NCBI GenBank assembly: GCA_002269645.1
Contig: NIVC01003337.1
Span: forward strand, 39,463 to 103,462
Origin: Macrostomum lignano
Taxonomy: Eukaryota
Reading direction: 5' to 3'
DNA: 64,000 nt
Both the position numbers and the translations under genes were made by a program. The notes below the pieces were generated by a model. That model did not search any database, had not been told where the DNA came from, and worked only from the letters and a program-made list of their open reading frames with translations. Shown here one piece after another: positions 7,349-62,280 of the stretch (the first letter of the stretch is position 1; every line of letters starts with the position of its first letter).

Positions 7349-9298
7349 CTACGAAATTCCCACCTTAGGATTTGAACAATGGCAGCAAGCTAGTGGCTTG
7401 AGACAACAGAGGGGCTGTCGGCTTCTGGAGGAAGTCCTTGTACTTCTGGTACACTCTCGTCTCGTGAACTTGAACCACTTGGCAGCTTGGACTTTAATCA
7501 TGACACGGCGTGAGAAAACAGAGAGGCTTTTGGCTTCTGGAAGAAATCCTTGTACTTCTGGTACACTCTCGTCTCGTGAACTTGAACCACCTGGCCGCTT
7601 GGACTTGAACCATGACCCGGCTTGAGACAACAGAGAGGCTTTCGGCTTCTGGAAAAAATCCTTGTACTTCTGGTACACTCTCGTCTCGTTCTGCAGCAGC
7701 ACCTGCATCAGTTCATCTTTCTTCAAGTTCTCTGCACGGGCCGCGAGCTCTCTAATATCCCTAAGCTGCTGGATTCGCTCAGGGTATCCTTCACGCTTAT
7801 TCATGTCCTCCGCCTCAATCAGCTTGTCAATGTAGTCCACCTCACTCAGCGGATCAGGCTTCAGAGCAATCTCATGCAGTCTCTTAAGGCACTTTGTGCT
7901 CTCGCTAATCAGCTGCATCACTTTGGCTTCGGTTTGCAGATAATCTCCGTAGACTTTTTCCGCTAACTGGCTGGCTGTCAACAGCTTGCCCTGCGCATCG
8001 GTGTAGCGGTTCTTCAACTCTTCCGAAGTCTTCGTGACGGATTCCCGTACAAAAATGAACCGATTTTGCCTGTTCTTGTGCACCGACCACACACAGTGCC
8101 CTGGGCATTCGCGGCATATGCCATCAGACATTGCAACACAGCCTGCTTTGTCACTGTCTACCGGAATAGCACAAGGATAGTGACAGGTTCGGTTGCAGTT
8201 CAGACAGTTTGTGATGTAATGTCCTGGAGGAATAGCTTCTTCTACCCTATTTTCCTCAACAACCGTGTAGGTGAAGTTCTTGTTCCGGTTCAGATCTTTT
8301 CGATGACTTTTTATTACATCTATCTCACGCTCCAGTTGGTTAAGAGCGCTGATACCTAAGTGGATCTCGTTCTTGATGGCAATTAAGTGAGTTTGCAATC
8401 TCTGACGCTCAGTCAGAACGTCTTTTGTTAGAGTCAGACTTTTGGCCTCTGTCTTGTTTAACTGAGAAAAGAAGTCCTTAAAGCTCTGCATTCCCACGTC
8501 CCAGAACATCTTGTTGAACATCTGGCTCTTGGAATCCATTTCGTGGCTTTTGGCAAACACAGCCGAATTGTTGAACTTGGTGTGCGACTTGTACACGATA
8601 CCCGCTTCTTTGAGCGACTCCAGTACCGGTGGGACGCTAGCGTCGGCGGAAGTGATCATGACAAAGATGTTATCGCCAATGTCCTTCCCAAAGAGGGAAA
8701 TTATCGCGTCATAGACGGATCGCTGGGTCGATGTCAGCCTGGTGACACCAGACGGCACCACGAAGCCCACAGCGTCCAGATGATCGACGCCAGCTGGAGA
8801 AGAAAAGAACTCCCGAATTCGAGCTACAATCTTCTTCTTCTTCTTCTTCTTCACGATGCCGCCAGTGTCACCGAACCCAGGAGTGTCCAACAGCGTCAGA
8901 GTGAATGGCTGCTGGCAGCCCTCGCGGTGATGAAATGTATAGGAGGTGACCCACTGTGTCTGGCTTTTTGAATGAGACTTCTGCTGGCTTTTTTCCTTGG
9001 AATCGGGGCTAATACTGAAGCGATAATTGTCTTCGAACTTCAGTCCAAAGTTGTAGTTGACCATTGAATTAATCAGCGACCCAGTTTCACCAACCATCAT
9101 GATCACCTTCTCTTCAACAGCTGAAGTTGGATCTTTGCGACCGAGCTCCATTTTCCGAACCTGGTATTTCTCATCGCATGCTGTCTGGTCCATTTGCAGT
9201 TCGTACTCAACTGGCTCTGCATCGCTGAGCTTCCGCGAAGAAAGCAGCAATTCATATTTTAGTTTATCCACAGAATTTGGCTTGACTTTTTGACTCAT
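7349..9298 (-). CDS. TRAFAC-class (septin/AIG1-like) GTPase-domain protein with coiled coil and Cys-rich domain; Walker A deleted
   Basis: 649-aa ORF: VGETGS-LINSMVN (GKS/T missing), LLDTPGFGDT (G3), ITSAD (G4-like), KFNNSAVF, and CLNCNRTCHYPC..C..CRECPGHCVWSVH. It is collinear with the C-terminal half of the 54646 gene. The ATG has an in-frame stop upstream and a 3' splice acceptor 13 nt upstream. Confidence 0.85.
   Translation of the reverse strand: MSQKVKPNSVDKLKYELLLSSRKLSDAEPVEYELQMDQTACDEKYQVRKMELGRKDPTSAVEEKVIMMVGETGSLINSMVNYNFGLKFEDNYRFSISPDSKEKSQQKSHSKSQTQWVTSYTFHHREGCQQPFTLTLLDTPGFGDTGGIVKKKKKKKIVARIREFFSSPAGVDHLDAVGFVVPSGVTRLTSTQRSVYDAIISLFGKDIGDNIFVMITSADASVPPVLESLKEAGIVYKSHTKFNNSAVFAKSHEMDSKSQMFNKMFWDVGMQSFKDFFSQLNKTEAKSLTLTKDVLTERQRLQTHLIAIKNEIHLGISALNQLEREIDVIKSHRKDLNRNKNFTYTVVEENRVEEAIPPGHYITNCLNCNRTCHYPCAIPVDSDKAGCVAMSDGICRECPGHCVWSVHKNRQNRFIFVRESVTKTSEELKNRYTDAQGKLLTASQLAEKVYGDYLQTEAKVMQLISESTKCLKRLHEIALKPDPLSEVDYIDKLIEAEDMNKREGYPERIQQLRDIRELAARAENLKKDELMQVLLQNETRVYQKYKDFFQKPKASLLSQAGSWFKSKRPGGSSSRDESVPEVQGFLPEAKSLSVFSRRVMIKVQAAKWFKFTRRECTRSTRTSSRSRQPLCCLKPLACCHCSNPKVGIS
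7392..7689. repeat. 112-bp unit in about 3 tandem copies inside the 3' end of the GTPase ORF
   Basis: The motif cttgtacttctggtacactctcgtctcg recurs three times with period 112 (ORF-track starts 7398 and 7622 are 224 apart). Confidence 0.9.
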
Positions 9299-35607: not shown

Positions 35608-38600
35608 TTAAAGATGAAATTTTTGAATGAGTGAGTGAGCCTGATTGGGCTTACTCATTCGCTTAGAGGCAGTGGAGCTTGACTCTAATGAGCTGGGATC
35701 AACTTCAGAAATGAGTCTAAGCCGAAAAGGATCCTTATACTGCACTTTATAGAAAGCATTGGCGATTGCATTGACAAACCTGGACTTTCCCGTTCCAGTC
35801 TCGCCCACGACTAGCATATATTTTGAATGCTCTGTCAAGTTTTCCTTGCTCTCGCCAATATCAAACGACTCTGGGCAGTTACAGTCGCCCTCGGGACAAT
35901 GGCAGCTCTCAGGCAGCTTTAGAAGGCGCTTCTTGAGCTGAAAAATCTCCCCAGGAAAAGTTTTATCACCCTCTTTCTTCAGCGGCTTTGACTCGCACAG
36001 GACCTTACGAGCGTACTCGGAGCAAAGCTTCAGAGGATTAGTCTCGAAGTGAACACTCTTGGATTCCTCCGAGTCGCCAAATGCAGTCATCGTCGAGATC
36101 TTGGCTTTGAACTTTGTGCCTGGTTCGAGGTCGTGAATATCAATGCTCGTTTTGTCAGGTAATTTTGTGAAGACCAAGCACTTCGAGCTCTTGCTCGCCT
36201 GGTAGACTTTTATTCTGTAATGTACTGGGAGACCAAGGTCACACTTCACAGCTGACCACGAAAGCTTTGACGTAGTAGATTTGATCTCTTCGCACACAAT
36301 ATTCTTCGGTGCAAGTGGCAGTTCCAGAGGACACCACTGTTGCTCTTTTCTGTACAGCTTGGTGATTTGGATCCGATTACTGTCGCTACGTGTAGACTCG
36401 CTTACCAGAGCAACAGCCACCTGCGAACCAAGGATGCATTCGTTTCTTTTGGCAACTTCGATTAGCTCATTCGCGAGTTTGTTTAACGTGTCATGATCTT
36501 CCGAGTCAATCCAGGTGTCGGCGCTTCGTTCCACAAAAAATGTATGAGTCACTTTATTCAGAAAAAGCCTCAAGTCCTTTAGGTAGGGAGATGCATCTGG
36601 AAAGGTCAGCTGAGCCAGTAACTTTTGATTGGCTGAACTTTCAAACTGCTGTTTGTCTATTGAATCCTTGATGAGCTTGATGCCCACTGAACTCAGTTGA
36701 GCTGCCAACGCCTGCAGAGCGATGCACTCCCTCTCTCGATTCGAAATCCAGCCAAGAAGTTGAGCGGGTCCGAACGGAGAATTGTCCCGGAAATTGGTCA
36801 ACAGCTTGGCGATTTTGTCGCATCCTTTCTTGTGCTCTCGAGCACCTGGCAGAGTCTTCAGCAGCTTTTCCGTGTATCTGGTCTTCATCTTCTCAACTTG
36901 GTTTACAAACTCTGAAAGCTCTGCGCGCTGCGTCTGCCAAGGACTCGATGCCAGCACTCGTTGCTGTGTTTCGGCCGCGCTGATGACATCATTGAGCTTC
37001 TGAAGATAGTCGCCAGCTTCGTTCAGCTGCTCATCCGTGATCTTCCGCTTCAGCATAACTACTTTGCCTCCAAGCGTGCTCAGGGGTGTCAAGTATGCCA
37101 CCAGTGGAGTCTTGGCTCTGTCGCTTGAGAACCTGCTCACACAGCCGAACGCCTCTCGCAAGGTCGTCGGTGGAGATTCAACATCGAAGTCACCGAAGTA
37201 GCGGCACTTCACCCTGTCATACACGCTGTCGTCAAAGTCGCTGCTGTACTTGGGCGGCGCGTCGGACTCACTGAAGGCGGCTTTCAGAGCGGACACCATC
37301 GACTCGAGACTCTCTTCCGACGCTGAGGCCTCGCCAAGCAGCTCTCTCTCCTTTTCGAACACGAGAAAGGCATTGGCTCCGAACTTGATGCCCGTCACCA
37401 CATGGGTCGCCGGGGTGTCCGCCAGCTGTTGTGGAAACTCGACGCCTCCACTTGGCTCCAAGTGCAGCTCGTCGAACCTTGTGACAATCCGGTAGGCCAG
37501 AGTGACTTCCTCGGAGTTGAGACTGGTCTTTGAGTCGTTCAGGTACCGACCAGAGCCTTCGACCTCGGTGTTGCCACACAGGAAGCCGAGCTTTAGATCC
37601 GGACTGAGTTTGAGCAGCTTCGCCTTGTCCGAAAATGTGCACTCTTTTTCGATGCTTATAGTTGGAGTTGGACTCACTTCCACTTGACTTTTGGTTATGT
37701 TGAGCTTTGCGGCTTGCGACCACAGCTTGGTCCCGGTGATGAAGCGGTCGTTTCGCGCATCGTACAGCGTGCCGAGAGCAACGGGTCGGCCCAGACAGGC
37801 CGTGCGGAGGTCCTTGTCATGAGTAGCTTCGCTACTATCTAAAATAACGAAATTGTAAGTAGTTCTACATGCAGTGTCAATAGTGCACTTATTAAGATGT
37901 CTCCACTTCTGCACCCAGCAACAGCATGTATAGCAAGGTTGAATGCAGCTAATATTTAGCTCAATGCACCTATTACGTCATCTATAAAGCATCCACCACC
38001 TGGCTGGCTACATTGCTGTGAGTTAGGCATATTTCTTTGACCATAACTTTTATAGTTGCTTCGCTGTTTTCAAAGTGTTCGGCAGCCGATCGTACTACTG
38101 CTGACAGACTCATCGAACCTAGGTTTTGCCACCTGTTTTAATTGTAAATTGGGAGTCACTACCGAATAATTGAAAGTGTGTTTGAAAAACTGATGACTGG
38201 AGTATTTTGAGGCCAATTTAATTAGATCCAGACAGATAGTCGCTGTGTTTATTTGCGATAGATTCACAAGAGGCAGCTTATGGATGATTAAATTGACAGG
38301 ATGTCAGAGTAAGCTGAAATACCGATTGCTAATTCCATGTGAAATTAGTCCTTCTTTCATACTACTCAATAGTATGAAACGTTCAGAATCAGAGAAATAC
38401 TTAATTAGCCTAAATTAGCCTACAAAACTTACCAGTAAACGCGTTGAATCGCGTACTATTAGAATCTGCAGTTTTATCAGGCAAGCCCTGCTCCCAAACA
38501 AACATGCTTAAACATACGAGTAGAAAATTAACACCCAATAACAGTGATTAACTAATCTCGATATGATTTTCAGTGAGACTGATACTATAACCCCACACGG

Positions 38601-41267: not shown

Positions 41268-42830
41268 GTGGAGCGGCCGGGTGGGTACCGCGCCCCTTTG
41301 AGGGTAGCCCACCAACCTTTTATCATGGCCTTCGAGCCGACTATGGATAAACAAGCTATTTCTAGGGACGGGGACCCTTCTAAACCCCAACCTCAGTCCG
41401 AAGGACCGGCCGGTCCTGCTGGCAGATCCCAACCGACTGATTCAACTGTGGCAAAGGAAGGACCGGCTGGCTCTGCTGGCAGATCCGACCAGAGCTACCA
41501 AACTCAAAATACCCTAAGACCTGCCAGCTCCGCTGGTGGATCTAAGGGAACCGCGAGCTCTGAGCCTAAAGGACCGGCCAAATCTGGCAGATCCGATGAA
41601 GCTCAGCGGGCTCGGCTTGAGCGCAAACGCGCTAAACAACGCGCCAAAAGGCAGGCCAAGAAGGGAGCTGCGGGGGCCAAAGCGGCGGCGTCCACCATGG
41701 ATGCTGAAGCGACTGGAGTCCCAAGGCAACCAGGCGGGCCGGCCGGTGGAAGCTCCAGTAGTTCAGCGGCGGCGCTCCCTGGAGCTGCTGCCGCGGCTGC
41801 TGAGGCCGAAACCACGGCGCAACAAATGGCCACTGCCAACAAGGAGGTTCCTTCGGGAGCTACCTTTGCGGCGAAGGCCAAGGCCAAAATCCCGGGAGTG
41901 ATCATCCAAGGTCGCGACCAGGACTGGACCACTGATCAGCTTCAAAAAGTGTGGAGTGCTGTTGACTCCTATCTGATTGAGCTGACTGTCGAGGAGGGAA
42001 TCTCCATCGGCGTTGAGCGGATGGTGCTGCGAAGCACATTCGTTCTTATTGCTCCTAGCAGCGAGGAGGACGCTCGGCGGCTGCTCCAGCGGCTACCGAC
42101 GGTCTCCTTGGATGCTGACCTTGGCGGAGCTCTTTTTCTTCGTGAGGGCCAGCGTCCAAAGACGATACCCTATGTGGTTTTCGTCCCTGCTAAGAGCACC
42201 GCAGCTGGACCAGACGTTATTCGCCGGGTCCTACTGCGTCTGAACCCCGACCTCCCTGCTAGTGGACTGGTGTATCACCGTAAAGTCCGCAGGGGGGAGA
42301 CGGGCAACTCAATTGTCCTCGGCCTTTCCAGCACTTGGGCGAGTCGGTACCCTAATGGATCCTCTTTCCAGCTGGGTGCCCTCAAGCTCAAGTTGCACCG
42401 AGGAAAGTCGGCCAAAGGGAAGGCTACTGCCAACCCCGGCATCTCCGGCAAGAGCGGGGCGCAGTCTAAGGCCCAAGGAAAGGCGCAAGCCGATCCCAAA
42501 GCCAAAGCTGCATCTCGCCCCTCTGCTAGCAGCAGTTCGGCGACCGCGGTAACGGCTCCGGCCAAGCCCCGGGAACCAAACCTGCCAGTCGGAGAAGGAG
42601 TTGAGGACGAGGCCGGGTCTTCGGAATCCGAGCTCTCCTCGGCCACCTTGGTGGGGTCTGAAGGTAAAGATGCAGGTGAGGAAGCTTCCTCCATCCTGTC
42701 ATCGGAGCCTGAGGACTCTGCTGGGGGGGCCGGTGGGGGTGAGGAGGCCATGGACGTCGACCAACTCCCATCTCCCAGTCAAGCCCCAGCGGCCTGGGAT
42801 GAGGACGATCTGTTGTCCAAGTCTCCTTGA
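41268..42830 (+). CDS. LINE ORF1 (gag-like nucleic-acid-binding protein); first ATG at 41325
   Basis: 520-aa ORF upstream of ORF2, with low-complexity basic/Ala-rich termini around a central globular domain. Position and composition are typical of ORF1. Confidence 0.8.
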   Translation: MERPGGYRAPLRVAHQPFIMAFEPTMDKQAISRDGDPSKPQPQSEGPAGPAGRSQPTDSTVAKEGPAGSAGRSDQSYQTQNTLRPASSAGGSKGTASSEPKGPAKSGRSDEAQRARLERKRAKQRAKRQAKKGAAGAKAAASTMDAEATGVPRQPGGPAGGSSSSSAAALPGAAAAAAEAETTAQQMATANKEVPSGATFAAKAKAKIPGVIIQGRDQDWTTDQLQKVWSAVDSYLIELTVEEGISIGVERMVLRSTFVLIAPSSEEDARRLLQRLPTVSLDADLGGALFLREGQRPKTIPYVVFVPAKSTAAGPDVIRRVLLRLNPDLPASGLVYHRKVRRGETGNSIVLGLSSTWASRYPNGSSFQLGALKLKLHRGKSAKGKATANPGISGKSGAQSKAQGKAQADPKAKAASRPSASSSSATAVTAPAKPREPNLPVGEGVEDEAGSSESELSSATLVGSEGKDAGEEASSILSSEPEDSAGGAGGGEEAMDVDQLPSPSQAPAAWDEDDLLSKSP

Positions 42831-42869
42831 TGGCCCTGGGCTCTAGCCAGATATTGCATTTAATACAGT

Positions 42870-45800
42870 ATGACTAAGCTCCACGCTGCCAAAGGAGCGA
42901 CATTCTGTCTGCAAATAAATTTACAGCATTGCGTATCTGCGTCAGTTAATCTGATGAAGATTGCTGAGCTGTACAGGCCAGGCCTCATCCTGATCCAGGA
43001 ACCCTGGATGCGCAACGGTAAGTTGCCCAACATTCCCTCTGGCTACTCTGATTTTTATGTGTGTGGCCCGGGGAACAGCCGCCCTAGAGCGGCTATCCTC
43101 GCTGCTAGCCATCTCCAGGCTTGGCTGAGGACTGATCTCTCTGATGGAGACCTTTGCGTCATCCAATCTAATCATTTCTCTCCGCGTACGTGTCTTGTTG
43201 CCTCGGTTTATATCCCAGGCGACAGAGACCCTGCTCCCGAGAGTTTACTGCGCCTTGCGCAGTACTGCGAGTCCCAGAACGCTGAGCTGTGCTTAGGGGG
43301 CGACCTCAACGCGCACCACAAGCACTGGGGCAGCAAAGATACCAACACTAGAGGAGAGGAGCTTCTGGCCCTCATCTCTAACACAAACCTCATGCTCTGC
43401 AACCGCGGCAGCACTCCTACCTTTAATAATGGCAGATGGACCGAGGTCCTCGACGCCACACTCGTTACCCCAAGACTCTTTGACAGAGTCAAGGAGTGGA
43501 GAGTCTGGTCTGAGGAGCCCTCCCTGTCTGACCACTGCTTTATCGCCTTTAATATCGCGGACACTAAAACCCAGTCTCCGATCACTTGGAGACGCAATAT
43601 CCGCAACACTGATTGGGCGGCCTACAAGGCTGCCCTTGATCTGCACCTGCAGGAACTCACGGACTTACGTCCGATTGAGACCTGCGAGGATGTGGATCAT
43701 ATGGCTGAGACGCTGACAGGTTGCATTATTGCAGCCTACGAAGCGGCTTGTCCTGCTCGCGCCTACAGAGGCAAGACCTCGGCGCCGTGGTGGAACCCGG
43801 AGCTGGGGAAACTCAGGCGGAAGGCCAAAAGCCTTCATCGCCGTGCCATGAAGACCGGAAACCCGGAGGACATGGAGCTTTTCCGGCAAGCCTCCCGCAA
43901 TTTCAAATCTGAAGTGCGCAAGGCCAAGGAATGTAAGTGGCGCCAATTCTGCAATGAATTGGATCAAGACAGACCTACTTCTAGGCTTGTCAAGGCCCTT
44001 ACAATGGACAAAATGTCCAAATTAGCCATGATCAAAAAAGATGATGGCTCTCTTACTAAAGACCCTGAAGAAGTGCTTCAGCATATGCTTAGCACATTCT
44101 TCCCGAGGGTACCTACTGCTAGACCGGAGCCCAACCATTCGATGGATGGAGCCACCCTAGCGGCGGGCATTGTCACTGAAGACCTAATCGCTCGTGCGGT
44201 CAGAACCTTCAAACCCTTCAAATCTCCTGGACCTGATGGTATCTACCCTGTTCTCCTTCGTGAAGCAGCCAAGATACCCTCGTTCCTGAGACTCACCCGC
44301 AATCTTATGCGGGCCTCTATCCAGCTGGGATACGTTCCCAAAAGCTGGACTGAAGCTCGAGTAGTCTTTATTCCCAAACCTGGGAAGGGTGACTACCAAA
44401 GCGTCAAGGCCTTCCGGCCAATTAGCTTAACGTCAGCAATGCTTAAGCTCACTGAGAGGCTTATTCTCTGGCGGCTGCTCTCCTGCGAGCTGACAGCGAT
44501 GCCCCTCAGCAATAATCAGCACGCCTTCCGTACCGGGAGGTCGACTGACAGCGCCCTGCATGCGATTGTCGAAAAGATTGAACGGGCGGTACTGGGTGAC
44601 GGTTACGCCCTGGCTCTCTTTCTTGACATTGTTGGCGCCTTCGACAACGTTATCTTTGAAGCGTTTCAGAGGGCCCTTCAAAATCGCAAAGCTCATGCTA
44701 CCCTCATACGGTGGATCATGTACATGATCTCCAACCGTACGGTCACTGCCCAACTTCTTGGGCAAACTGCCTCCACCAGAGTCTGTAAGGGTGGACCCAA
44801 GGCGGAGTCCTCACCCCGACGCTCTGGAACCTGGTCATGGACGCTCTTCTGAGTGACTCCCGACCTGACCCCGTCTTCAAAGTCGGGTATGCTGATGACG
44901 TCACGGCCATTGTGGCAGGACCGTCTCCCAGCACGCTCAGGGATCTGATGCAGAGCTTTATCCGCAAAGCAGAATCCTGGGCCAATGACAATGGTTTGGA
45001 ACTCTCTGAGCCCAAAACCGTTGCCATTATGTTTACCAGCAGACTACGCTGGAACATACGTCCTCTGCAGCTCTACGGCAGAGATATTGCCTTCGCGCAC
45101 CAGACCAGATGTCTCGGGGTCACACTTGACCACCGGCTCAACTGGTCCTTCCACGTGAAAGCAAAAGCTAAGCGTGCCTCAGCCATCCTGGCCCAGCTCC
45201 GACGAGCACTTGGCACTTCTTGGGGTCTATCCCCAAAGCGGCTTTGGTGGATCTATACTTCCGTAGTTAGACCTGCCATTACGTACGCCTCTGTTGTCTG
45301 GGTTAGCGCTACCCAGGTCAAAAGCCATGCAGACCTGCTCAACACGATCCAAGGCAGAGCGTGTAGGCTCATCTGCAACGCCACCAGGTCCACGCCCTTT
45401 GCTGGCATGGGGGCCTTTCTTAATCTTCCGCCTCTTGACCTCTTCATCAGGGGTGAGGCGGCTAGAACGACGCGGCGTCTAATTGATGCCGGCGTCAAAT
45501 TCATTTACATGAGAGCACCTGCTAAGCGGAACCTTGTCCCGCATAGCGATCTGTGCCTCAACTTTCTCAACGAGTGTCAGGCCAATCGCGTCTTCACCGA
45601 TGGCATTGCCTCAACGCTCAACCTGAGACAGCGCTACTCCGTAGCTATCGACTCGCGCGATAACATCAATGACCATTGGAACCCTGGTGAGCTTCATTGC
45701 TACACCGACGGTTCTAAGCAGTCAGCCAACACCGGCTTTGGTGTTGGAATCTTTCTGAACGGGAGGGTCATCGCTACCCACGCTCAATACACTGGGGTCA

Positions 45801-46609
45801 ACTCCAGTGTTTTCCAAAATGAAGTTCTGGCCATCAGCTCCTGCACTGCAGAGCTTCTCGCCACTGGCGTTACTGGTAAGAACATCATTTTCCATTCGGA
45901 CAGCCAAGCTGCCTTGCACGCCATCAGTGGCTGCAGCACCAACTCTGCTACAGTCCTTGACTGTATCAAACTCCTCAATGTGTTGGGTTCCGCCAACAAA
46001 ATTACCCTTAAGTGGGTTCCGGGGCATGTGGGGATCCGAGGAAATGAGTTGGCTGACACCCTTGCAAAAGTTGGTGCCTCCGGCTCCTCTCTCGGCCCCG
46101 AACCTCTTGTCCCGATTCCTGGCTGTGTCATCGACTCGCGCATCAAAGCGTGGATCAGGACTCAGCACCGCTCGACTTGGGCGAACCGCACGAACTGCAG
46201 GCAATCCAGAGGCGCTGTCCCTCAGCCCTCTCACCAGCTCCGGAAGCTCCTCTTGCGCCTCTCGCGCAGAGACATCCGGGCTGCCACCATGACCCTCTCT
46301 GGTCACGGCTGCTTCTCCAGGCACCAGTACCTGCAGGGCAACGCCACCAACGCCACCTGTAGTTTCTGCAACTCAGGTGACGAAACCGCTGAGCATTTCG
46401 TCAGCATCTGTCCCGCCTTCACGCGGGCCAGACTCACTTACCTCGGGCCACACACATCTATTACTGAAGCGTGCAAACCCGAAAACTTTAATCAGCTCAT
46501 GCGCTACCTTCGGGCCACCCGCAGGGCTGAACTCTCCTTTCCAGAGAGCACCATAGCTGCTGGCGACACTGGGGGACCTCCCTGGGCGGCGCCAACCCTC
46601 CGTCCATAG
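42870..46609 (+). CDS. LINE ORF2: AP endonuclease - reverse transcriptase - RNase H - CCHC, with one -1 frameshift at ~44798
   Basis: APE (QINLQH, LIQEPW, GGDLNAHH, SDH); RT (PGPDGI, FRPISLTS, LFLDIVGAFD, YADD); RNase H (YTDGSK, HSDSQAAL, KWVPGHVGIRGNELAD); CSFC..ETAEHF..C. Adding one C in ggacccaagg restores KGGPQGGVLTPTLWNLVMD. Confidence 0.93.
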
Positions 46610-51344: not shown

Positions 51345-53660
51345 AACACCCGGCCATGGACAGGAACACCCAGCCATGGACAGGAACACCCAGCCATGGA
51401 CAGGAACACCCAGCCATGGACAGGAACACCCAGCCATGGACAGAAACACCCAGCCATGGACAGAAACACCCAGCCATGGACAGAAACACCCAGCCATGGA
51501 CAGGAACACCCAGCCATGGACAGGAACACACAGTCATGGACAGGAACACTTAGCCATGGACAGGAACACCAAGCTATGGATAGAAACACTCAGCTATGGA
51601 TAGAAACACCCAGCTATGGACAGAAACACCCAGCTATGGATAGAAACACTCAGCTATGGATAGAAACACCCAGCTATGGATAGAAACACCCAGCTATGGA
51701 CAGGAACACCCAGCTATGGATAGAAACACTCAGCTATGGATAGAAACACCCAGCTATGGATAGAAACACCCAGCTATAGATAGAAACACCCAGCTATGGA
51801 CAGGAACACCCAGCCATGGACAGGAACACCCAGCTATGGACAGGAACACCCAGCTATGGACAGGAACACCCAGCTATGGACAGGAACACCCAGCTATGGA
51901 CAGGAACACCCAGCTATGGATAGAAACACCCAGCTATGGATAGAAACACTCAGCTATGGACAGGAACACCCAGCCATGGACAGGAACACCCAGCTATGGA
52001 CAGGAACACCCAGCTATGGACAGGAACACCCAGCTATGGATAGAAACACTCAGCTATGGATAGAAACACCCAGCTATGGATAGAAACACCCAGCTATGGA
52101 TAGAAACACCCAGCTATAGATAGAAACACCCAGCTATGGATAGAAACACCCAGCCATGGACAGGAACACCCAGCCATGGACAGAAACACCCAGCCATGGA
52201 CAGGAACACCCAGCTATGGACAGGAACACCCAGCTATGGACAGGAACACCCAGCCATGGACAGGAACACCCAGCTATGGACAGGAACACCCAGCCATGGA
52301 CAGGAACACCCAGCTATGGACAGGAACACCCAGCTATGGACAGGAACACCCAGCTATGGACAGGAACACCCAGCTATGGACAGGAACACCCAGCTATGGA
52401 CAGGAACACCCAGCTATGGATAGAAACACCCAGCTATGGATAGAAACACTCAGCTATGGACAGGAACACCCAGCCATGGACAGGAACACCCAGCTATGGA
52501 CAGGAACACCCAGCTATGGATAGAAACACCCAGCTATGGATAGAAACACCCAGCTATGGACAGGAACACCCAGCTATGGACAGGAACACCCAGCTATGGA
52601 TAGAAACACTCAGCTATGGATAGAAACACCCAGCTATGGATAGAAACACCCAGCTATGGATAGAAACACCCAGCTATAGATAGAAACATCCAGCTATGGA
52701 TAGAAACACCCAGCCATGGACAGAAACACCCAGCCATGGACAGGAACACCCAGCCATGGACAGGAACACCCAGCCATGGACAGGAACACCCAGCTATGGA
52801 CAGGAACACCCAGCCATGGACAGGAACACCCAGCCATGGACAGGAACACCCAGCTATGGACAGGAACACCCAGCCATGGACAGGAACACCCAGCTATGGA
52901 CAGGAACACCCAGCTATGGATAGAAACACTCAGCTATGGATAGAAACACCCAGCTATGGATAGAAACACTCAGCTATGGACAGTTACACCCAGCCATGGA
53001 CAGGAACACCCAGCTATGGACAGGAACACCCAGCTATGGATAGAAACACCCAGCTATGGATAGAAACACCCAGCTATGGACAGGAACACCCAGCTATGGA
53101 CAGGAACACCCAGCTATGGATAGAAACACTCAGCTATGGATAGAAACACCCAGCTATGGATAGAAACACCCAGCTATGGATAGAAACACCCAGCTATAGA
53201 TAGAAACACCCAGCTATGGATAGAAACACCCAGCCATGGACAGAAACACCCAGCCATGGACAGGAACACCCAGCCATGGACAGGAACACCCAGCCATGGA
53301 CAGGAACACCCAGCTATGGACAGGAACACCCAGCCATGGACAGGAACACCCAGCCATGGACAGGAACACCCAGCTATGGACAGGAACACCCAGCCATGGA
53401 CAGGAACACCCAGCCATGGACAGGAACACCCAGCTATGGACAGGAACACCCAGCCATGGACAGGAACACCCAGCCATGGACAGGAACACCCAGCTATGGA
53501 CAGGAACACCCAGCCATGGACAGGAACACCCAGCCATGGACAGGAACACCCAGCTATGGACAGGAACACCCAGCCATGGACAGGAACACCCAGCTATGGA
53601 CAGGAACACCCAGCTATGGACAGGAACACCCAGCTATGGACAGGAACACCCAGCTATGGC
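51345..53660. repeat. 20-bp satellite array B (CCCAGCYATGGAYAGRAACA)n, same family and orientation as array A
   Basis: About 115 tandem units; the variant cagctatagatag recurs at ~51776, 52116, 52676 and 53196. Confidence 0.97.
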
Positions 53661-54295: not shown

Positions 54296-54565
54296 TTAAT
54301 AATAATAATAAATACTTCATTACACCTGCCCTAATGGGCAGATGTGCAACCGACAGCTCAGCCGCAGCTGTTGCGTGGCGCATCTGAAGGCTGCGTACGG
54401 CTATTCAGTCCAATGACTGGGGGTCGCCACACCCTCAATTACCCCAGCTAATGCTGGCACCCATTTTACAGCTGGGTGAACTGAAGCAGTGCAGAATTAA
54501 TTGCCTTGCTCAAAGACACCATGCAGTTGTTATAGTGGTATCGGGAATCGAACCCACGACCTTCA
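54296..54565 (-). mobile_element. 5'-truncated tRNA-derived SINE (CORE/V-domain-like)
   Basis: Minus strand: B-box GGGTTCGATTCCC, then gtgtctttgagcaaggcaattaattctgcactg..cccagctgtaaaatggg, ending in a (TAT)n-type tail. A related 3' fragment (ttgcgtggcgcatc.ga.ggctg) lies at ~34595. Confidence 0.6.
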
Positions 54566-54645
54566 AGGTAACTTTTCAAGGTAAAAAACTTTTTAAGTTT
54601 CAAAAGCTATTCAAGACTATGCAAAAAGCCAATTAGGTTCAGGGA

Positions 54646-57600
54646 TCACTTGGGCTCACTCGTGGCGCTCTCGCAGCGCTGCAGCATCTCGGCGATCTTG
54701 TTGCCGAACGGATCTTCGCCACGGCGAGTCTGGGCGATCATTTCGGCAGATTTTCGAGCCTCTGCTAGGTACTTGACGCGGCTCTGCCAGCCAGGCGTCT
54801 GCTCCATCTCCTGGCTGCTAATGAGGTTATCAATGTACTGCACTACGCCTAGAGGGTACTGCCGAAGTGCCAGCTGATCAAGAGCTTCAAAGCACTTGTG
54901 AATTGTCACAATGTTGTACGTGAGCTCCTGGTGCTCTGCCGAGAGTTCTTCTCTCAGAGTTTCAATCAGTTTCCGTTTAGCCTCCCGATCTTTGACGCTG
55001 AGCTCGTACTTCTCAAAGATCTCCGTCACGCTGACGATCTCCTCCTCGGTGGTGTGCACGAAGTAGTGATCCGAGCACTCGTGCTCCTTCCAGCTGCACT
55101 TTTTCGGGCACACGGAGCAATTGCCAAAGAGCGTGAAAACTCGGCACTTTTTCCTGCTTTCTGGAAGTCCCCTGGAACAGTCGTTGTGGCAGGTGTTCTC
55201 GCACACTCTGCAGCGCATCACGTAGCGACCAGGACCTGGAGTCTTCTTCACCTTTTTCGGCACCATCACTTTCCGAGTCTTGTTCATGTCGGCGTCCTTG
55301 ATCACGGCGTCCAATGTATCCACGAGGTTGAGCTGCTCTTCAAGTAGAGCCATTTTATCGAAGCACACCTGCACCTTTTCCCACATCTTCTCCTTTGAGT
55401 GCTCCAGCGTGCTGCGCTGCCTCAAAACATTTCGAGTGGTCTTCAGGGAGATCGCATCAGCTTTGCTTAGCCAATCGAACAGCTCAGAGTAGCTAAACCA
55501 GGCCTGCTCCCAATCGAGCTGGCTCGCCCGAAGAGCCATTTGATGCTTTTTCTCTTCTGCTGAACAGGCACCCTGCGGTTCCGGCTCTGAGTTGTCGGAG
55601 TAAAGCACGCCATTGTTAAACTTCAGGATTTGCTTATACGGTACATTGTGCTCGCTTAGAGCAGCCAGTGCCTGTGGCTCATTGCTGTCTGCAAATGTCA
55701 TGACCGGAAGAATTATCTTTGCGATATCCTTTCCAAACAGGGATAGAACCTGATCGAAAATGTACTTTTGTGTCGGGGTCAGTCGGTTTTGAGACGCCTT
55801 AACCACAAAGCCAACGGCGTGCAGGATGCCCGTCATTCCTGGAATGCAGGTGCTGTCTTCTCCGAGCACTCGGGCGATCTTCTTAACGACTCGCTGATCC
55901 TCTTCGAGACCCCGGGTGTCTCCGAAGCCGGGAGTATCGATGACGGTCAGCGGGCAGTCCAGGGCACTTCTGCCCGAGCTGCACCCGCCCGAGGTGTCCA
56001 CCGGATGAAGAGTATACAATGACACCTTGGACGTCTGAGAATGCGCCTGGTTAATAATTTGACTTATTCTATTTGAAGCAGTGGATTCCAACGCCGAACA
56101 TTCCGGGGCGGTTTCAGAAATCAAGCGCAGTCGAAAGTTGTCCTTGTATTCAACTTTGTAGAAGGCATTTACAAGCGCGTTGATGAATCTGGTTTTTCCT
56201 GTGCCAGTCTCGCCCACAACCAGCAGGTACTTCCCTGGACTGCTTTTGCACGCGCCAATGTCGAATGACTCAGGGCAGATGCAGTGGTCCGCAGGGCACT
56301 GGCAGCTCTCAGGCAGCTTTAGGAGTCTCATTTTGAGCTGGAAAATCTCGCCAGGAAACGCTTCGTCGCCTTCTTTCCTCACGGGCTTCGACTCGCACAT
56401 GATCTTTCGCACGTACTCGGAGCAGAGCTCCAGAGGCAGCGTTTCAAAACGGACGCTACGGGACTCAACTGAATCCCCAAACGGAGTCACTGTAGAGATC
56501 TTGGCCTTGAATTTGCTACTTGGATCGAGCTCGTGAACGTCAGTAGTGACTTCGTCAGTGAGTTTCGTGACGACAAGCTCACTCGAGTCTTTTTTGGAGG
56601 AAACGTAGATATTAATTCGGTACTGCACAGCTGGCGCAAATTCGCTCTTCACGGCCGACCATGAAAACTTGGCCCGAGTGGACTTAATTTCCTCGCATGA
56701 CAGATCCTTCGGTGGTGGCGGAATCTCCAGAGCGCACCACTGGTGTCCCTTTCTGTACTTTTTTATAATTTCGATTCGGTCCGTATTGTTGCGACCGGCT
56801 TCGCTAATTAGAGCTGCAGAAACGGTGAATTTATCGTCTGTTCTGTTTCTTTCAACAATGGACACAAGCTCGTTCACCAGTACAATGATCTTTTCATGCT
56901 CTTCAGTGTCATGCCAGGTATCCCGGCTCCGCTCCACAGTAGAGTAATTGCTTTCACCATTGAGGAATCTCTGAAGACTTTTTAAATAGAAAGATATCGT
57001 TGGAAAATTAAGCTCAACTAGAAGCTTCTGTTCAGCTGATTTTTCAAACTGCTGTTTGTCTGTGGCATCCTTGATGAGCTTGATGCCCACTGAGCTCAGT
57101 TGAGCTGCCAACGCCTGCAGAGCGATGCACTCCCTCTCTCGATTCGAAATCCAGTCAAGAAGCTGGGCGGGTCCGAACGGAGAATTGTCCCGGAAATTGG
57201 TCAACAGCTTGGTAATTTTATCGCATCCTTTATTGTGCTCTCGAGCATCTGGCAGAGTCTTCAGCAGCTTTTCCGTGTATCTGGTCTTTATCACTTCTAC
57301 CATATTCACGAACTCTGAAAGCTCTGCACGCTGCGTCTGCCACGGACTCGATGCCAGCACACGCTGCTGTGTTCCGGCCGCGCTGATGGAATCATTGAGC
57401 CTCTGAAGATAGTCGCCAGCTTCGTTCAGCTGCTCATCCGTGATCTTCCGTTTCAGCATAACTACTTTGCCTCCAAGCGTGCTCAGAGGTGTCAAGTAAG
57501 CCACCAGTGGAGTCTCGGCGCTGTCGCTTGAGAAGCTGCTCACACAGCCGAACGCCTCTCGCAAAGTCGTCGGTGGAGATTCGACATCGAAGTCACCGAA

Positions 57601-59254
57601 GTAGCGACACTTCACTCTGTCATACACACTGTCGTCAAAGTCGCTGCTGTACTTGGGCGGCGCGTCGGACTCATTGAAGGCGACTTTTAGAGCGGACACC
57701 ATCGACTCGAGACTCTCTTCCGACGCTGAGGCCTCGCCAAGCAGCTCTCTCTCCTTTTCGAACACGAGAAAGGCATTGGCTCCGAACTTGATGCCCGTCA
57801 CCACATGGGTCGCCGGGGTGTCCGCCAGCTGTTGTGGAAACTCGACGCCTCCACTTGGCTCCAAGTGCAGCTCGTCGAACCTTGTGACAATCCGGTAGGC
57901 CAGAGTGACTTCCTCAGAGTTGAGACTGGTCTTTGAGTCGTTCAGGTACCGACCAGAGCCTTCGACCTCGGTGTTGCCACACAGGAAGCCGAGCTTCAGA
58001 TCCGGACTGAGTTTGAGCAGTTTCGCCTTGTCCGAAAATGTGCACTCTTTTTCGATGCTGATAGTTCGAGTCACTTCCACTTGACTTTTGGTCATGTCGA
58101 GCGTCGCGGCTTGCGACCACAGCTTGGTCCCGGTGATGAAGCGGTCGTTTCGCGCATCGTACAGCGTGCCGAGAGCGACGGGTCGGCCCAGACAGGCAAT
58201 TCGGAGGTCTTTGTCTTTGAAGGAACCGTGGGCATCTGAACAGCAAAGTAGTGTGGAAACAAGAATGTTAAAAAGTGTGGGACTTAACACGTTTGGATCT
58301 ACCACAGGTACTTTGCTAGCTTTGGTACTGAGACATGCGGTATGTAGTGGTACGTTAAACAATCAATAAAAAGCGCTGTTGCTTCGATCGTGAAATTTTT
58401 TAAATCTCTAGCGGTGACCAAAGTGTGGGTGGCAAAAAGCAAGGACAGCAAAAGTTTCCTAGACAACCGATAGTGTCAATCGTGATATGCAGGGTGGTTC
58501 AGAAAGGCCTCCCTGGCTTTTCTGAGTACTGGGTTGATGGATTGGGCACAACCTTGACCTGCTTAAACTTTTTAATGATATTTTTACTTTAGAAGCTTGT
58601 TACTTGCTTCAATAATCTTGAAATTACACTACCGGACGTATCTGCTGTATTTCAGTTCTCTGCATGGCTTATACGTCAGTTGAGAGATTCAAAATGACGT
58701 CCTGACTTTAAGAGACTTTAAGAGGTATAGACAACTATGGGCCGTCAGGTTGAGAAGTTACTAACAGCTTTACAGCAGATTGTTACAATTGTGCTTAAAC
58801 ACAAGTCAATGCATGTAATAAAAAGCTGTGTTTAAGAAAACTGCTCTGTTTTTTTAACCGAGAGACCTTACTGGACCACTCTGTATAGCTTTATACAATG
58901 CCATTCGAGAAACAGATTAGGAGTATCGTCACAGGTACATGTAAGTCATTGGTAGTGCATTCACGAATGAGAAATGAGGTGGTGAATCAACTAAGAAGCA
59001 CTGGTCGAAAGCATTTGGCGCATGGCTAAATAGTACACAAGCAGTATTGATTTGATTTAAGAAATATCGGCAACCGCATGCATTTGGCCAGCCAGAAAGA
59101 AGCAAGAGAAAGTTCACTGTCTGCCATTTTACTTTCGGAATTATGCTAACGACTTTACGTTAGCATACGTTAGCATAACGCACTCACCAGCCGGCGGTCT
59201 CCGCTTGAACTTCTTCTTGAAGGCACTCCTAGCGGCCGAGAGCTTCTTATTCAT
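54646..59254 (-). CDS. Stonustoxin-like MACPF - FN3 - TRAFAC GTPase - coiled coil - Cys-rich fusion protein (copy B, ~1218 aa)
   Basis: Exon 1 59254-59188 (MNKKLSAARSAFKKKFKRRPPA, phase-1 donor gtgagt) and exon 2 58235-54646 (gttcag acceptor). SNTX-type motifs as in copy A; G1 GETGTGKT, G3 DTPGFGD, G4-like TFAD, KFNN; CRVCENTCHNDC..C..CSVCPKKCSWKEH. Confidence 0.9.
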
Positions 59255-60109: not shown

Positions 60110-60188
60110 ACAGACAGAAAGACAGACAGACAGACAGACACTGGGACAGGCAGACAGACATACACTCTAATAGACAGACAGGACACGA

Positions 60189-60245
<57 letters not shown>

Positions 60246-60285
60246 TACAGACAAATAGACAGACAGGACACGAAGACAGACACTA

Positions 60286-60374
<89 letters not shown>

Positions 60375-60700
60375 TACAGACAAATAGACAGACAGGACAC
60401 GAAGACAGACAGGACACGAAGACAGACAGGACACGAAGACAGACAGGACACGAAGACAGACAGGACACGAAGACAGACAGGACACGAAGACAGACAGGAC
60501 ACGAAGACAGACAGGACACGAAGACAGACAGAAAGACACTAAGCACTAAGACACACAGACAGACTTTAAGACATACATATACTAAGGCAGACTGACATAC
60601 AGACACTAAAACACACAGAAACTAAGACAGAAAGACACTAAGGCAGACAGACAGACAGATAGACAGACAGACACTAAGATAGACAGACAGACAGGCAGAC
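60110..60700. repeat. (GACA)n microsatellite with 18-bp GACAGACAGGACACGAA-type units
   Basis: Directly visible. Confidence 0.95.
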
Positions 60701-61510
60701 AAACACTAAGGCAGACAAACACACTAAGGCAGACAAACACTAAGGCAGACAAACACACTAAGGCAGACAAACACTAAGGCAGACAAACACACTAAGGCAG
60801 ACAAACACTAAGGCAGACAAACACACTAAGGCAGACAAACACTAAGGCAGACAAACACACTAAGGCAGACAAACACTAAGGCAGACAAACACTAAGGCAG
60901 ACAAACACACTAAGGCAGACAAACACTAAGGCAGACAAACACACTAAGGCAGACAAACACTAAGGCAGACAAACACACTAAGGCAGACAAACACACTAGG
61001 CAGACAAACACACTAGGCAGACAAACACTAAGGCAGACAAACACTAAGGCAGACAAACACACTAAGGCAGACAAACACTAAGGCAGACAAACACACTAAG
61101 GCAGACAAACACTAAGGCAGACAAACACACTAAGGCAGACAAACACACTAGGCAGACAAACACACTAGGCAGACAAACACTAAGGCAGACAAACACTAAG
61201 GCAGACAAACACACTAAGGCAGACAAACACTAAGGCAGACAAACACACTAAGGCAGACAAACACTAAGGCAGACAAACACACTAAGGCAGACAAACACAC
61301 TAAGGCAGACAAACACACTAGGCAGACAAACACACTAAGGCAGACAAACACTAAGGCAGACAAACACTAAGGCAGACAAACACTAAGGCAGACAAACACA
61401 CTAAGGCAGACAAACACTAAGGCAGACAAACACACTAAGGCAGACAAACACTAAGGCAGACAAACACTAAGGCAGACAAACACACTAAGGCAGACAAACA
61501 CTAAGACAGA
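60700..61510. repeat. 15/17-bp minisatellite (ACTAAGGCAGACAAAC[AC])n
   Basis: Directly visible alternating units. Confidence 0.95.
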
Positions 61511-62280
61511 CAGACAGCATGTGGATATGCAGGCAGTCGCACACTGATATGAGATGAATAGTGGCTCTGACTTTCCTACTTTCATGCCTGAAGGATCAGT
61601 CATGTACTGTCATGTACTGTCATGTATTTACACAGTGGGCAGAATCGCATGACAAGCTTTAAGGTCCTGAACTCTAACGCCAGAACCCGAAGCCAGTGAA
61701 GGTTTGCAAGGAATCAAGCTTTAAAAATAGAAAATCGGGTGTGTTTTCTCCCGGCTACCCGGCATCGCACAGCAGTTTTCGCTGTCGCTTTGGAAACATG
61801 ATAACCGTCCGGCGGTTAGCTTACTAATGAGTAGTGAGGAAAGAATCTGAAGCGATTTTGAATCTTCTTTAGGGTGTAGCATTTTTTCACGTCCAGATTT
61901 AAGTGCAATCTACGCTTGAGTTCACAGTTCCGCTGCCAACACAAATACAAGGCCGAAAAAATATGCAGACCTCACAACAAGGACCACTGCATTGAAGTTA
62001 CCGTCGTAACTGTTACGGAACTTCTGGTGGTCCTTGGCTCACAACAGGTCCTACAGGCGCTTTGACGATCGAGACAGATGTAAATTTAGAAACCCTATAT
62101 TATATACTAACAACAGCATACAATTTTCGCTTTCTGCTTGGATTGCAAATTAGTTATTAAAGGCCATTCATGTTTATTGTGACTTGAATTTATTACAACA
62201 GTAAAAAAAAGTACGCGAAGACAGGTTGTCATGCTAGTTTCCATGTAAACTGTTCACTGTCCAACAGGCTCAGGTGTACA

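Follow-up and report, generated by a model that had tools for sequence, protein, structure and literature searches.

What would a flatworm protein do that carries a pore-forming toxin domain and a GTPase in a single chain? This question is raised by a minus-strand gene in a 64,000-nucleotide stretch of Macrostomum lignano DNA (assembly GCA_002269645.1, contig NIVC01003337.1, positions 39,463 to 103,462 of the forward strand; "the window" below means this whole stretch). Proteins of the perforin type are known weapons that are secreted or act in a lumen; GTPases of the septin/GIMAP type, in contrast, are known to assemble in the cytosol. An earlier reading of the DNA letters (the original prediction) had described a frame of ~1218 residues joining a membrane attack complex/perforin (MACPF) region of the stonustoxin (SNTX)/neoverrucotoxin type to a fibronectin type III (FN3) domain, a complete TRAFAC G domain, coiled coils and a multi-Cys domain, with no signal peptide. 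Our analysis revealed that the protein is a member of an undescribed MACPF_SNTX-GTPase family, neither septin nor GIMAP, and that this conserved family occurs with one layout in fungi, cnidarians, flatworms, crustaceans, echinoderms and ray-finned fishes. Judging from its sequence and by analogy with known oligomerising systems, we give slightly less than an even chance to the reading that the protein is an intracellular pore former armed by GTP-dependent assembly, acting as a cell-autonomous immune or cell-death effector.

Gene structure and domain architecture

The open reading frame (ORF) listing contained an uninterrupted frame of 1238 codons (54646..58362, minus strand). Reading of the upstream DNA and comparison with the database protein resolved it into a two-exon minus-strand gene with a 1218-residue product, 100% identical to the M. 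lignano hypothetical protein BOX15_Mlig008863g1. Both exons were recovered by tblastn of BOX15_Mlig008863g1 onto the window (residues 1–22 at 100%), and the exon join (...RRPPA/DAHGS) agreed with the annotated protein. The MACPF and GTPase regions lie within one exon, so no splicing is required to link the two halves. Spliced-leader trans-splicing that would provide a start codon at the exon-2 acceptor was rejected because that start would be out of frame, and the plus-strand ORFs overlapping the gene (149 residues or fewer) were taken as chance. An open frame of 3.7 kb with full-length homologues in many phyla is far beyond chance. Domain coordinates on the DNA, verified by back-translation, are given in Table 1.

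A phmmer search against all PDB sequences matched the N-terminal part of the protein to stonustoxin alpha (E 1.5e-32) and beta (E 4.2e-32) of PDB 4WVM, spanning SNTX residues 3–394 and 6–427, respectively. Pfam PF24674 (MACPF_SNTX) is recorded for BOX15_Mlig008863g1, marked weak, and Pfam Thioredoxin_11 (PF18078) was found on homologues, with no record for the flatworm protein itself. The AlphaFold2 model of residues 24–645 was confident over the first ~500 residues. Its MACPF domain, with a predicted local distance difference test score (pLDDT) of ~80–94 over most of its length, had strands that were long and bent and, in the positions expected, two helical clusters, followed by a helical domain and then an alpha/beta thioredoxin-like (THX) domain, which is the MACPF-FAT-THX order of SNTX. 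Foldseek placed this model closest to 4wvm_B (E 1e-27, 577 columns) and 4wvm_A (E 3e-25, 500 columns, 4.4 Å), with TgPLP1, cholesterol-dependent cytolysins, MPEG-1, C8/C9 and perforin ranked below.

The MACPF signature of the flatworm protein, ATHVVTGIKFGA, reads P-A-T-H-V-x6-G-A and has the T, the H and the first G at the spacing of the consensus (Y/W)-G-(T/S)-H-(F/Y)-x6-G-G; in the alignment, other residues stand in for the aromatic-Gly pair and the second Gly, which is also the case in SNTX. The T-H-x7-G core was invariant between animal and fungal members. Among 83 family MACPF domains, TMH1 showed the strongest period-2 hydrophobic moment of the domain (2.23). This alternating pattern of TMH1 and TMH2 fits membrane-inserting hairpins, with which it is compatible and of which it is no proof.

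The FN3 domain was weak in a single-sequence search (E 0.0035, phmmer against PDB) and clear with a profile of four flatworm paralogs against PDB, which matched titin (2.3e-21) and PTPRF (5.1e-21). For the G domain, a six-sequence profile matched Cdc10 (3.8e-8), SEPT9 (2e-7), Toc34 (7e-7) and GIMAP7 (1.7e-5). A model of residues 640–1218 built on a 65-sequence alignment (pLDDT 81, predicted template modelling score 0.73) was matched by Foldseek to GIMAP2 (1.2e-5), Toc34 (1.7e-5) and SEPT2 (7.5e-5). In these 65 module sequences, G1, SQT, DTPGFGDT, R-L-T..Q, TFAD and FNNS were invariant or nearly so; the R-L-T-x-x-Q segment bears a resemblance to the GIMAP conserved box. Pfam Septin and AIG1 matches were faint or weak on the flatworm protein and clear on relatives. 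Because septin, GIMAP and Toc scores were similar, the G domain is not assignable to any one of them; its motifs indicate an intact domain of the septin-like clade, best treated as a separate branch. A whole-protein scan of NCBIfam, a library of prokaryotic families, gave generic P-loop noise only. A dynamin-type large G domain was not found: IniA, DLP1/2 and Fzo1 gave weak whole-chain matches (TM-score ~0.2, root-mean-square deviation ~30 Å), and in Foldseek the G domain itself was closer to the septin-like clade than to dynamin-like proteins. A disordered insertion in the G domain (residues 733–755) is apparently flatworm-specific.

Beyond the G domain, the model showed an outgoing pair of long helices, a beta-rich domain, a 53-residue return helix and a helical bundle, so that in the model the beta-rich domain is placed between the two arms of a helical stalk. 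This domain contains a Cys/His cluster (residues 1031–1076; CxxCx3CHx2Cx10Cx8CxxCx3CxWxxH) whose C, C, CH, C, C, C, C, W and H positions are invariant or nearly so among relatives, and it probably binds zinc. No significant solved homologue was found with a 17-sequence profile against PDB sequences (best E 0.075), and a C1-like or RING-like identity was rejected on this result. The C-terminal region (residues 1091–1218) carries the conserved motif ALxxxPL..V.YID.LI..E.

The exon 1 leader MNKKLSAARSAFKKKFKRRPPA has nine K/R in 22 residues and no hydrophobic core, and across the whole protein no signal peptide or transmembrane segment was found (no 19-residue window was transmembrane-like in hydrophobicity). 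This leader is confined to the present gene and a near-identical copy, the other family members beginning at the MACPF domain; its function could be membrane binding or nuclear localisation. In family members generally, the initiator Met and the first MACPF motif are separated by a median of 15 residues, and the stretch between them contains nothing hydrophobic; the leaderless state is therefore a family trait, as in SNTX. These features suggest that the protein is probably cytosolic, a setting that would suit the GTPase and the Cys/His cluster.

Every domain named in the original prediction was thus recovered. The ~1218-residue frame was confirmed; its strand, left unstated in that reading, is minus, and both of its halves sit in exon 2, so transcripts cannot separate them. 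The N-terminal residues matched the SNTX-type MACPF fold by sequence and by Foldseek, FN3 emerged at a profile E of 2e-21, and the proposed complete TRAFAC G domain has its GETGTGKT, DTPG and TFAD motifs together with septin/Toc34/GIMAP likeness by profile and fold. The multi-Cys domain corresponds to the Cys/His cluster, and the absence of a hydrophobic leader agreed with the claim of no signal peptide. The coiled coils were matched by long helices in the model, and it is only as long helices that they stand.

Distribution of the family

An exhaustive phmmer search of 1.84 billion representative sequences with the exon-2 protein returned 3898 matches at E <= 1e-3 and 904 at E <= 1e-30, many spanning the whole query in one stretch. 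Word-indexed homologue searches with the full protein and with the N-terminal alignment had given eight matches each, and it was the exhaustive search that revealed the family. By local domain classification, the SNTX-type MACPF and this GTPase module occurred together in at least 88 of the 267 collected proteins, and the GTPase module alone in 143. Walker A and D[TS]PG were retained in 78 of 85 fusion proteins.

The fusion was found in M. lignano (three or more paralogs), the shrimp Palaemon carinicauda and the crayfish Cherax quadricarinatus, the soft coral Dendronephthya gigantea, the sea urchins Lytechinus pictus and L. variegatus, the sea cucumber Apostichopus japonicus, the reedfish (Erpetoichthys), the bowfin (Amia), the mullet Mugil cephalus, and ascomycete fungi such as Daldinia vernicosa. 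All of these named members are annotated as uncharacterized or hypothetical, or after one domain (FN3). The fungal proteins align with the animal ones end to end and carry a Cys-rich insert in place of FN3. The GTPase module alone was present in a sponge, a coral, a rotifer, an ostracod, shrimps, many fishes, a shark and frogs. Its N-terminal additions vary (none, FN3, Ig, SAM, THX or MACPF), and these interchangeable parts make the module resemble a switch chassis carrying effectors. Some members carry two to three tandem GTPase/stalk modules or two to three MACPF-helical units, reaching ~3000 residues; such chains could be fused gene models or genuine concatenated oligomers.

The original prediction had placed the architecture in an invertebrate and had guessed that unannotated fusions might exist in fish. 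The flatworm gene agrees with the former, and the proteins of Mugil, Erpetoichthys and Amia with the latter. Its presentation of the gene as a singular fusion did not hold, the protein being one member of a large, old family whose GTPase module bears other additions elsewhere. Its statement that no functional description was known still applies across the literature searched, in which no paper was found that joins stonustoxin or MACPF with a GTPase, septin, AIG1 or GIMAP as a fusion, or that mentions the gene id BOX15_Mlig008863g1.

Cyanobacterial proteins of ~1010–1026 residues, from a Pseudanabaena metagenome-assembled genome (MAG; contig JANMFC010000321.1, 4393–7473) and from Roseofilum sp. 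SID1, were 32–35% identical to the animal GTPase/stalk/Cys module, Cys/His cluster included. The Pseudanabaena gene lies between a RelA/SpoT gene and a dynamin-like GTPase gene. Contamination as the source of this match was rejected, the RelA/SpoT and peptidase neighbours constituting a bacterial context, and this truly bacterial context suggests inter-domain transfer of the GTPase module, in either direction. Matches on small Mycoplasma and Eggerthellaceae MAG contigs may represent contamination.

Relationship to the stonefish toxins

Stonustoxin, neoverrucotoxin and SNTX-like proteins (4WVM) share with the flatworm protein the MACPF, helical and thioredoxin-like domains in the same order, the lack of a leader, a start ~15–30 residues from the first MACPF strand, and the ATHVVTGI..GA signature. 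SNTX ends in PRYSPRY, whereas the flatworm protein has FN3 and a GTPase/stalk/Cys module of ~530 residues. Since PRY/SPRY was neither recorded nor detectable, with FN3 and the GTPase module filling that position, the protein is not to be filed as a stonustoxin orthologue. SNTX comes from venomous fish and forms an alpha/beta heterodimer, whereas M. lignano is no venomous fish and its protein gave no sign of a heterodimer.

When the MACPF and helical region of 18 sequences was used for a neighbour-joining tree (200 bootstrap replicates), the fungal fusions branched off first and those of the flatworm next, both outside a clade with 95% support. This clade contained the coral, crustacean, echinoderm and fish fusions together with fish PRYSPRY-type SNTX-like proteins, with poor inner resolution and small sampling. 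The simplest reading of this topology would be that the GTPase-fused layout is older and that the PRYSPRY toxins were derived from it. A broader extension, which we regard as somewhat unlikely, is that the fusion is ancestral for the whole stonustoxin branch: the family would comprise, opisthokont-wide, perforin-like cytosolic executioners armed by GTP and serving cell-autonomous immunity or programmed cell death, and the fish toxins would have arisen late, within vertebrates, by exchange of the GTPase switch for PRYSPRY. In that case, the "SNTX-like toxins" of invertebrate venom surveys would largely be intracellular immune proteins.

In the stonefish genome, four sntx-like genes lying next to each other on chromosome 6 exceed normal SNTX in length, having lost exon 3 and extended exon 2 with full-length Iso-seq support; the extra sequence is left undescribed, and a GTPase is not mentioned (PMC10566576). 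These four genes may be fish members of the MACPF-GTPase family.

Proposed mode of action and competing explanations

The proposal of a GTP-gated pore former draws on the leaderless state, the conserved G motifs and the known behaviour of septins, GIMAPs and Toc proteins. Nucleotide-dependent dimerisation through G domains is established for septins, GIMAPs and Toc34. At rest, the MACPF domain would be kept monomeric and soluble. Upon GTP binding, the G domains would dimerise or polymerise, as in septins, GIMAPs and Toc34, possibly on a membrane that the Cys/His domain of the stalk, FN3 or both would recognise as a target. The high local concentration and orientation of MACPF domains would then give rise to a prepore ring, and TMH1 and TMH2 would unfurl into a beta-barrel in an intracellular membrane, which could be that of an organelle or of a vacuole enclosing a pathogen, or else the plasma membrane at its inner face. 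Hydrolysis of GTP would reset the assembly or keep it limited.

Several points weigh against this proposal. SNTX has no signal peptide and is present in venom, so the absent leader is no proof of intracellular action. Fungal members read TNTR where animal members read TFAD, and guanine specificity may therefore not be universal. The period-2 moment of TMH2 was moderate (1.57, among the same 83 domains). The N-terminal model was built on a shallow alignment of 17 sequences, and the fold match is in part dependent on the sequence match, AlphaFold2 having probably seen 4WVM; with these caveats, the sequence E-value is the independent evidence. The structures were modelled as two separate pieces (residues 24–645 and 640–1218), which do not give the placement of the MACPF domain relative to the GTPase. 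No experiment or expression data for any family member were found in the literature searched.

Other explanations were weighed against the same evidence. That the gene is dead or an artefact (a pseudogene in decay, or a chimera created by annotation or assembly) is very improbable. Nearby copies are damaged, one stopping inside the G domain and another lacking the Walker A GKT, and BOX15_Mlig008863g2 finishes at 944 residues in a frameshifted tail; against this, the target exon is open over 3.6 kb with every motif intact, at least 88 proteins from many phyla share the end-to-end architecture, and the ratio of nonsynonymous to synonymous divergence (dN/dS) is ~0.28 relative to the neighbouring paralog. 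For the target copy, this explanation is effectively already refuted. That the protein serves as a non-lytic membrane GTPase, a septin- or dynamin-like scaffold or remodeller in organelle dynamics, membrane repair or trafficking whose MACPF domain only binds membrane or protein, is unlikely in our view. Non-lytic MACPF proteins exist, most of the family has the GTPase module without MACPF, the G-domain-plus-stalk region gave the weak whole-chain matches to IniA, DLP1/2 and Fzo1, and the cyanobacterial homologue adjoins a dynamin-like GTPase gene. However, the MACPF signature and the amphipathic TMH1 pattern are kept across the family, the closest solved relative is a proven pore former, and the tandem, truncated and mosaic paralogs resemble a defence locus more than a housekeeping one.

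A released cytolysin, stored in gland or epidermal cells and freed by rupture or unconventional secretion to act from outside, with the GTPase/Cys module in place of PRYSPRY as a targeting or storage domain, is less likely still. It would account for the strong homology to a bona fide venom toxin that is likewise leaderless, and surveys of nemerteans, cerianthids and corals routinely catalogue SNTX-like transcripts as putative toxins, the GTPase going unmentioned. The strong conservation of the G motifs would make little sense extracellularly, where GTP is scarce; moreover, the architecture is also found in fungi and many non-venomous animals, and the GTPase module occurs without the toxin domain in hundreds of proteins. 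The remaining probability falls to mechanisms not considered here.

If the GTP-armed intracellular pore former is the correct reading, it would represent a new control of MACPF pores, by a nucleotide switch instead of secretion, pH or proteolysis, and a new class of candidate effectors that kill cells or lyse pathogen vacuoles. The account of where the stonefish toxins came from would change as well, as PRYSPRY toxins sit among GTPase fusions in the MACPF tree, and caution is advised before SNTX-like transcripts of invertebrates are named as components of venom. Because the flatworm model M. lignano is open to transgenesis and RNAi, the hypothesis is directly testable.

Comparison with known systems

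The septin, AIG1 (GIMAP) and Toc34/Toc159 GTPases share with the flatworm protein a G1 of the form GxxGxGKT/S, a septin-like G3 (DTPGFGD), a T-x-x-D G4 and an AIG1-like segment (H-A-x-x-F-V...R-L-T), the best matches being Cdc10/SEPT9, Toc34 and GIMAP2/7. They differ in that the flatworm G domain matches each of them at only 1e-8 to 1e-5, and in that they have neither its long stalk with the inserted Cys/His beta-domain nor a pore-forming domain. GBPs, IRGs and dynamin-like proteins share the concept of a cytosolic G domain on a helical stalk with nucleotide-dependent assembly at membranes, and IniA, bacterial dynamin-like proteins and Fzo1 showed a weak whole-chain structural likeness to the GTPase module. 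These proteins lack MACPF, separate lytic effectors being recruited, whereas the flatworm G domain is not of the dynamin/GBP type and the putative lytic domain is in the same chain.

By purely functional analogy, the logic proposed here would be that of plant NLR resistosomes and fungal HeLo-NLRs, in which a nucleotide-driven oligomeriser is combined with an N-terminal membrane permeabiliser; NLR-type systems use a STAND/NACHT ATPase, whereas the flatworm protein has a septin-like GTPase instead. MPEG1 (perforin-2), which was among the Foldseek matches, provides a case of MACPF pores acting inside cells. However, it is a signal-peptide-bearing transmembrane protein that acts from the vesicle lumen, unlike the leaderless flatworm protein.

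Feature coordinates and genomic neighbourhood

Table 1. Features of the MACPF-GTPase gene and of its two relatives in the window
Feature	Residues	Position in window	Strand	Evidence or remark
Exon 1	1–22	59188..59254	minus	ATG at 59254; 22-residue polybasic leader MNKKLSAARSAFKKKFKRRPPA
Intron, GT..AG, 952 nt		58236..59187	minus	sequence read
Exon 2, 3590 nt	23–1218	54646..58235	minus	all domains; TGA stop at 54646-54648
SNTX-type MACPF/CDC domain	~30–270	57493..58215	minus	phmmer, fold, signature, amphipathicity
TMH1	85–128	57919-58050	minus	model
MACPF signature ATHVVTGIKFGA	164–175	57778-57813	minus	alignment
TMH2	185–230	57613-57750	minus	model
Stonustoxin helical (FAT-like) domain	271–410	57073..57492	minus	Pfam PF21109, model helices, alignment to 4WVM
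Thioredoxin-like (THX) domain as in SNTX	~411–527	56722..57072	minus	alpha/beta pattern in model
Fibronectin type III domain	528–622	56437..56721	minus	phmmer and profile
Linker with small Cys/His motif CQCPADHCICPESFDIGAC	motif at 667–685	56236..56436	minus	also in truncated paralog
G domain, septin/AIG1(GIMAP)/Toc clade	690–915	55558..56235	minus	motifs, profile, fold
G1 GETGTGKT	697–704	56191-56214	minus	motif
Candidate switch-I Thr (SQT)	757	56032-56034	minus	motif
G3 DTPG	789–792	55927-55938	minus	motif
G4-type TFAD	869–872	55687-55698	minus	motif
Two long helices, outgoing stalk arm	~915–1003	55276..55557	minus	helices 276-308 and 315-364 of model
Beta-rich Cys/His cluster domain	1010–1090	55033..55275	minus	motifs, model
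Returning long helix and C-terminal helical bundle	1091–1218	54649..55032	minus	model
Truncated paralog		35608..37914	minus	77% identical to target residues 23-762 (MACPF, helical, THX, FN3, Walker A)
Stand-alone GTPase/stalk/Cys gene, 649-residue ORF		7349..9298	minus	29% identical to target residues 691-1196

Three related genes, all on the minus strand, are present in the window: the target, a truncated paralog and a stand-alone GTPase/stalk/Cys gene (Table 1). The truncated paralog runs into a stop within the G domain, directly behind "NQAHS" and ahead of the switch-I SQT, G3 and G4, and its missing 3' part was not found in the window by relaxed tblastn; this copy may be a pseudogene, or else a partner subunit that lacks the GTPase. 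Its divergence from the target is mosaic, with synonymous divergence (dS) of 0.12–0.19 in the MACPF and helical domains and ~2 in residues 421–640 (overall dN/dS 0.28), a pattern that points to gene conversion or exon-scale recombination. In the stand-alone gene, the P-loop reads GETGS-LIN, the GKT being deleted relative to an M. lignano relative, and a run of seven lysines derives from a poly-A tract; this ORF may represent a pseudo-GTPase, a pseudogene or an assembly error. BOX15_Mlig008863g2, on another contig, is 99–100% identical to the target until about residue 920 and then continues into an unrelated 20-residue tail (944 residues in total), which suggests either a sequencing error or a frameshift in an allele or paralog.

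Three consecutive plus-strand ORFs of 520, 660 and 590 residues (41268-46609) lie between the paralogs. The middle one matched LINE/R2-type APE endonuclease and reverse transcriptase (TRAS1 1.2e-16; LINE-1 ORF2p ~5e-10), and these matches identify a non-LTR (long terminal repeat) retroelement. A cluster with truncated, P-loop-deleted and mosaic copies and a LINE would be what is typically seen where defence genes evolve fast.

Long tandem arrays lie on both sides of the target, with a 20-bp unit repeated ~116 times downstream (51345-53659) and ACAG-rich units of 34/68 bp upstream (60110-61516); they account for the repetitive pseudo-ORFs in the ORF list. Scanning the window with Rfam and for tRNAs (ARAGORN) gave no hits. 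A string resembling a tRNA T arm, GGTCGTGGGTTCGATTCCCGATACCA, was observed at ~54540-54570 on the minus strand, ~80 nt past the stop codon, and may be a fragment of a tRNA-derived short interspersed nuclear element in the 3' untranslated region or flank.

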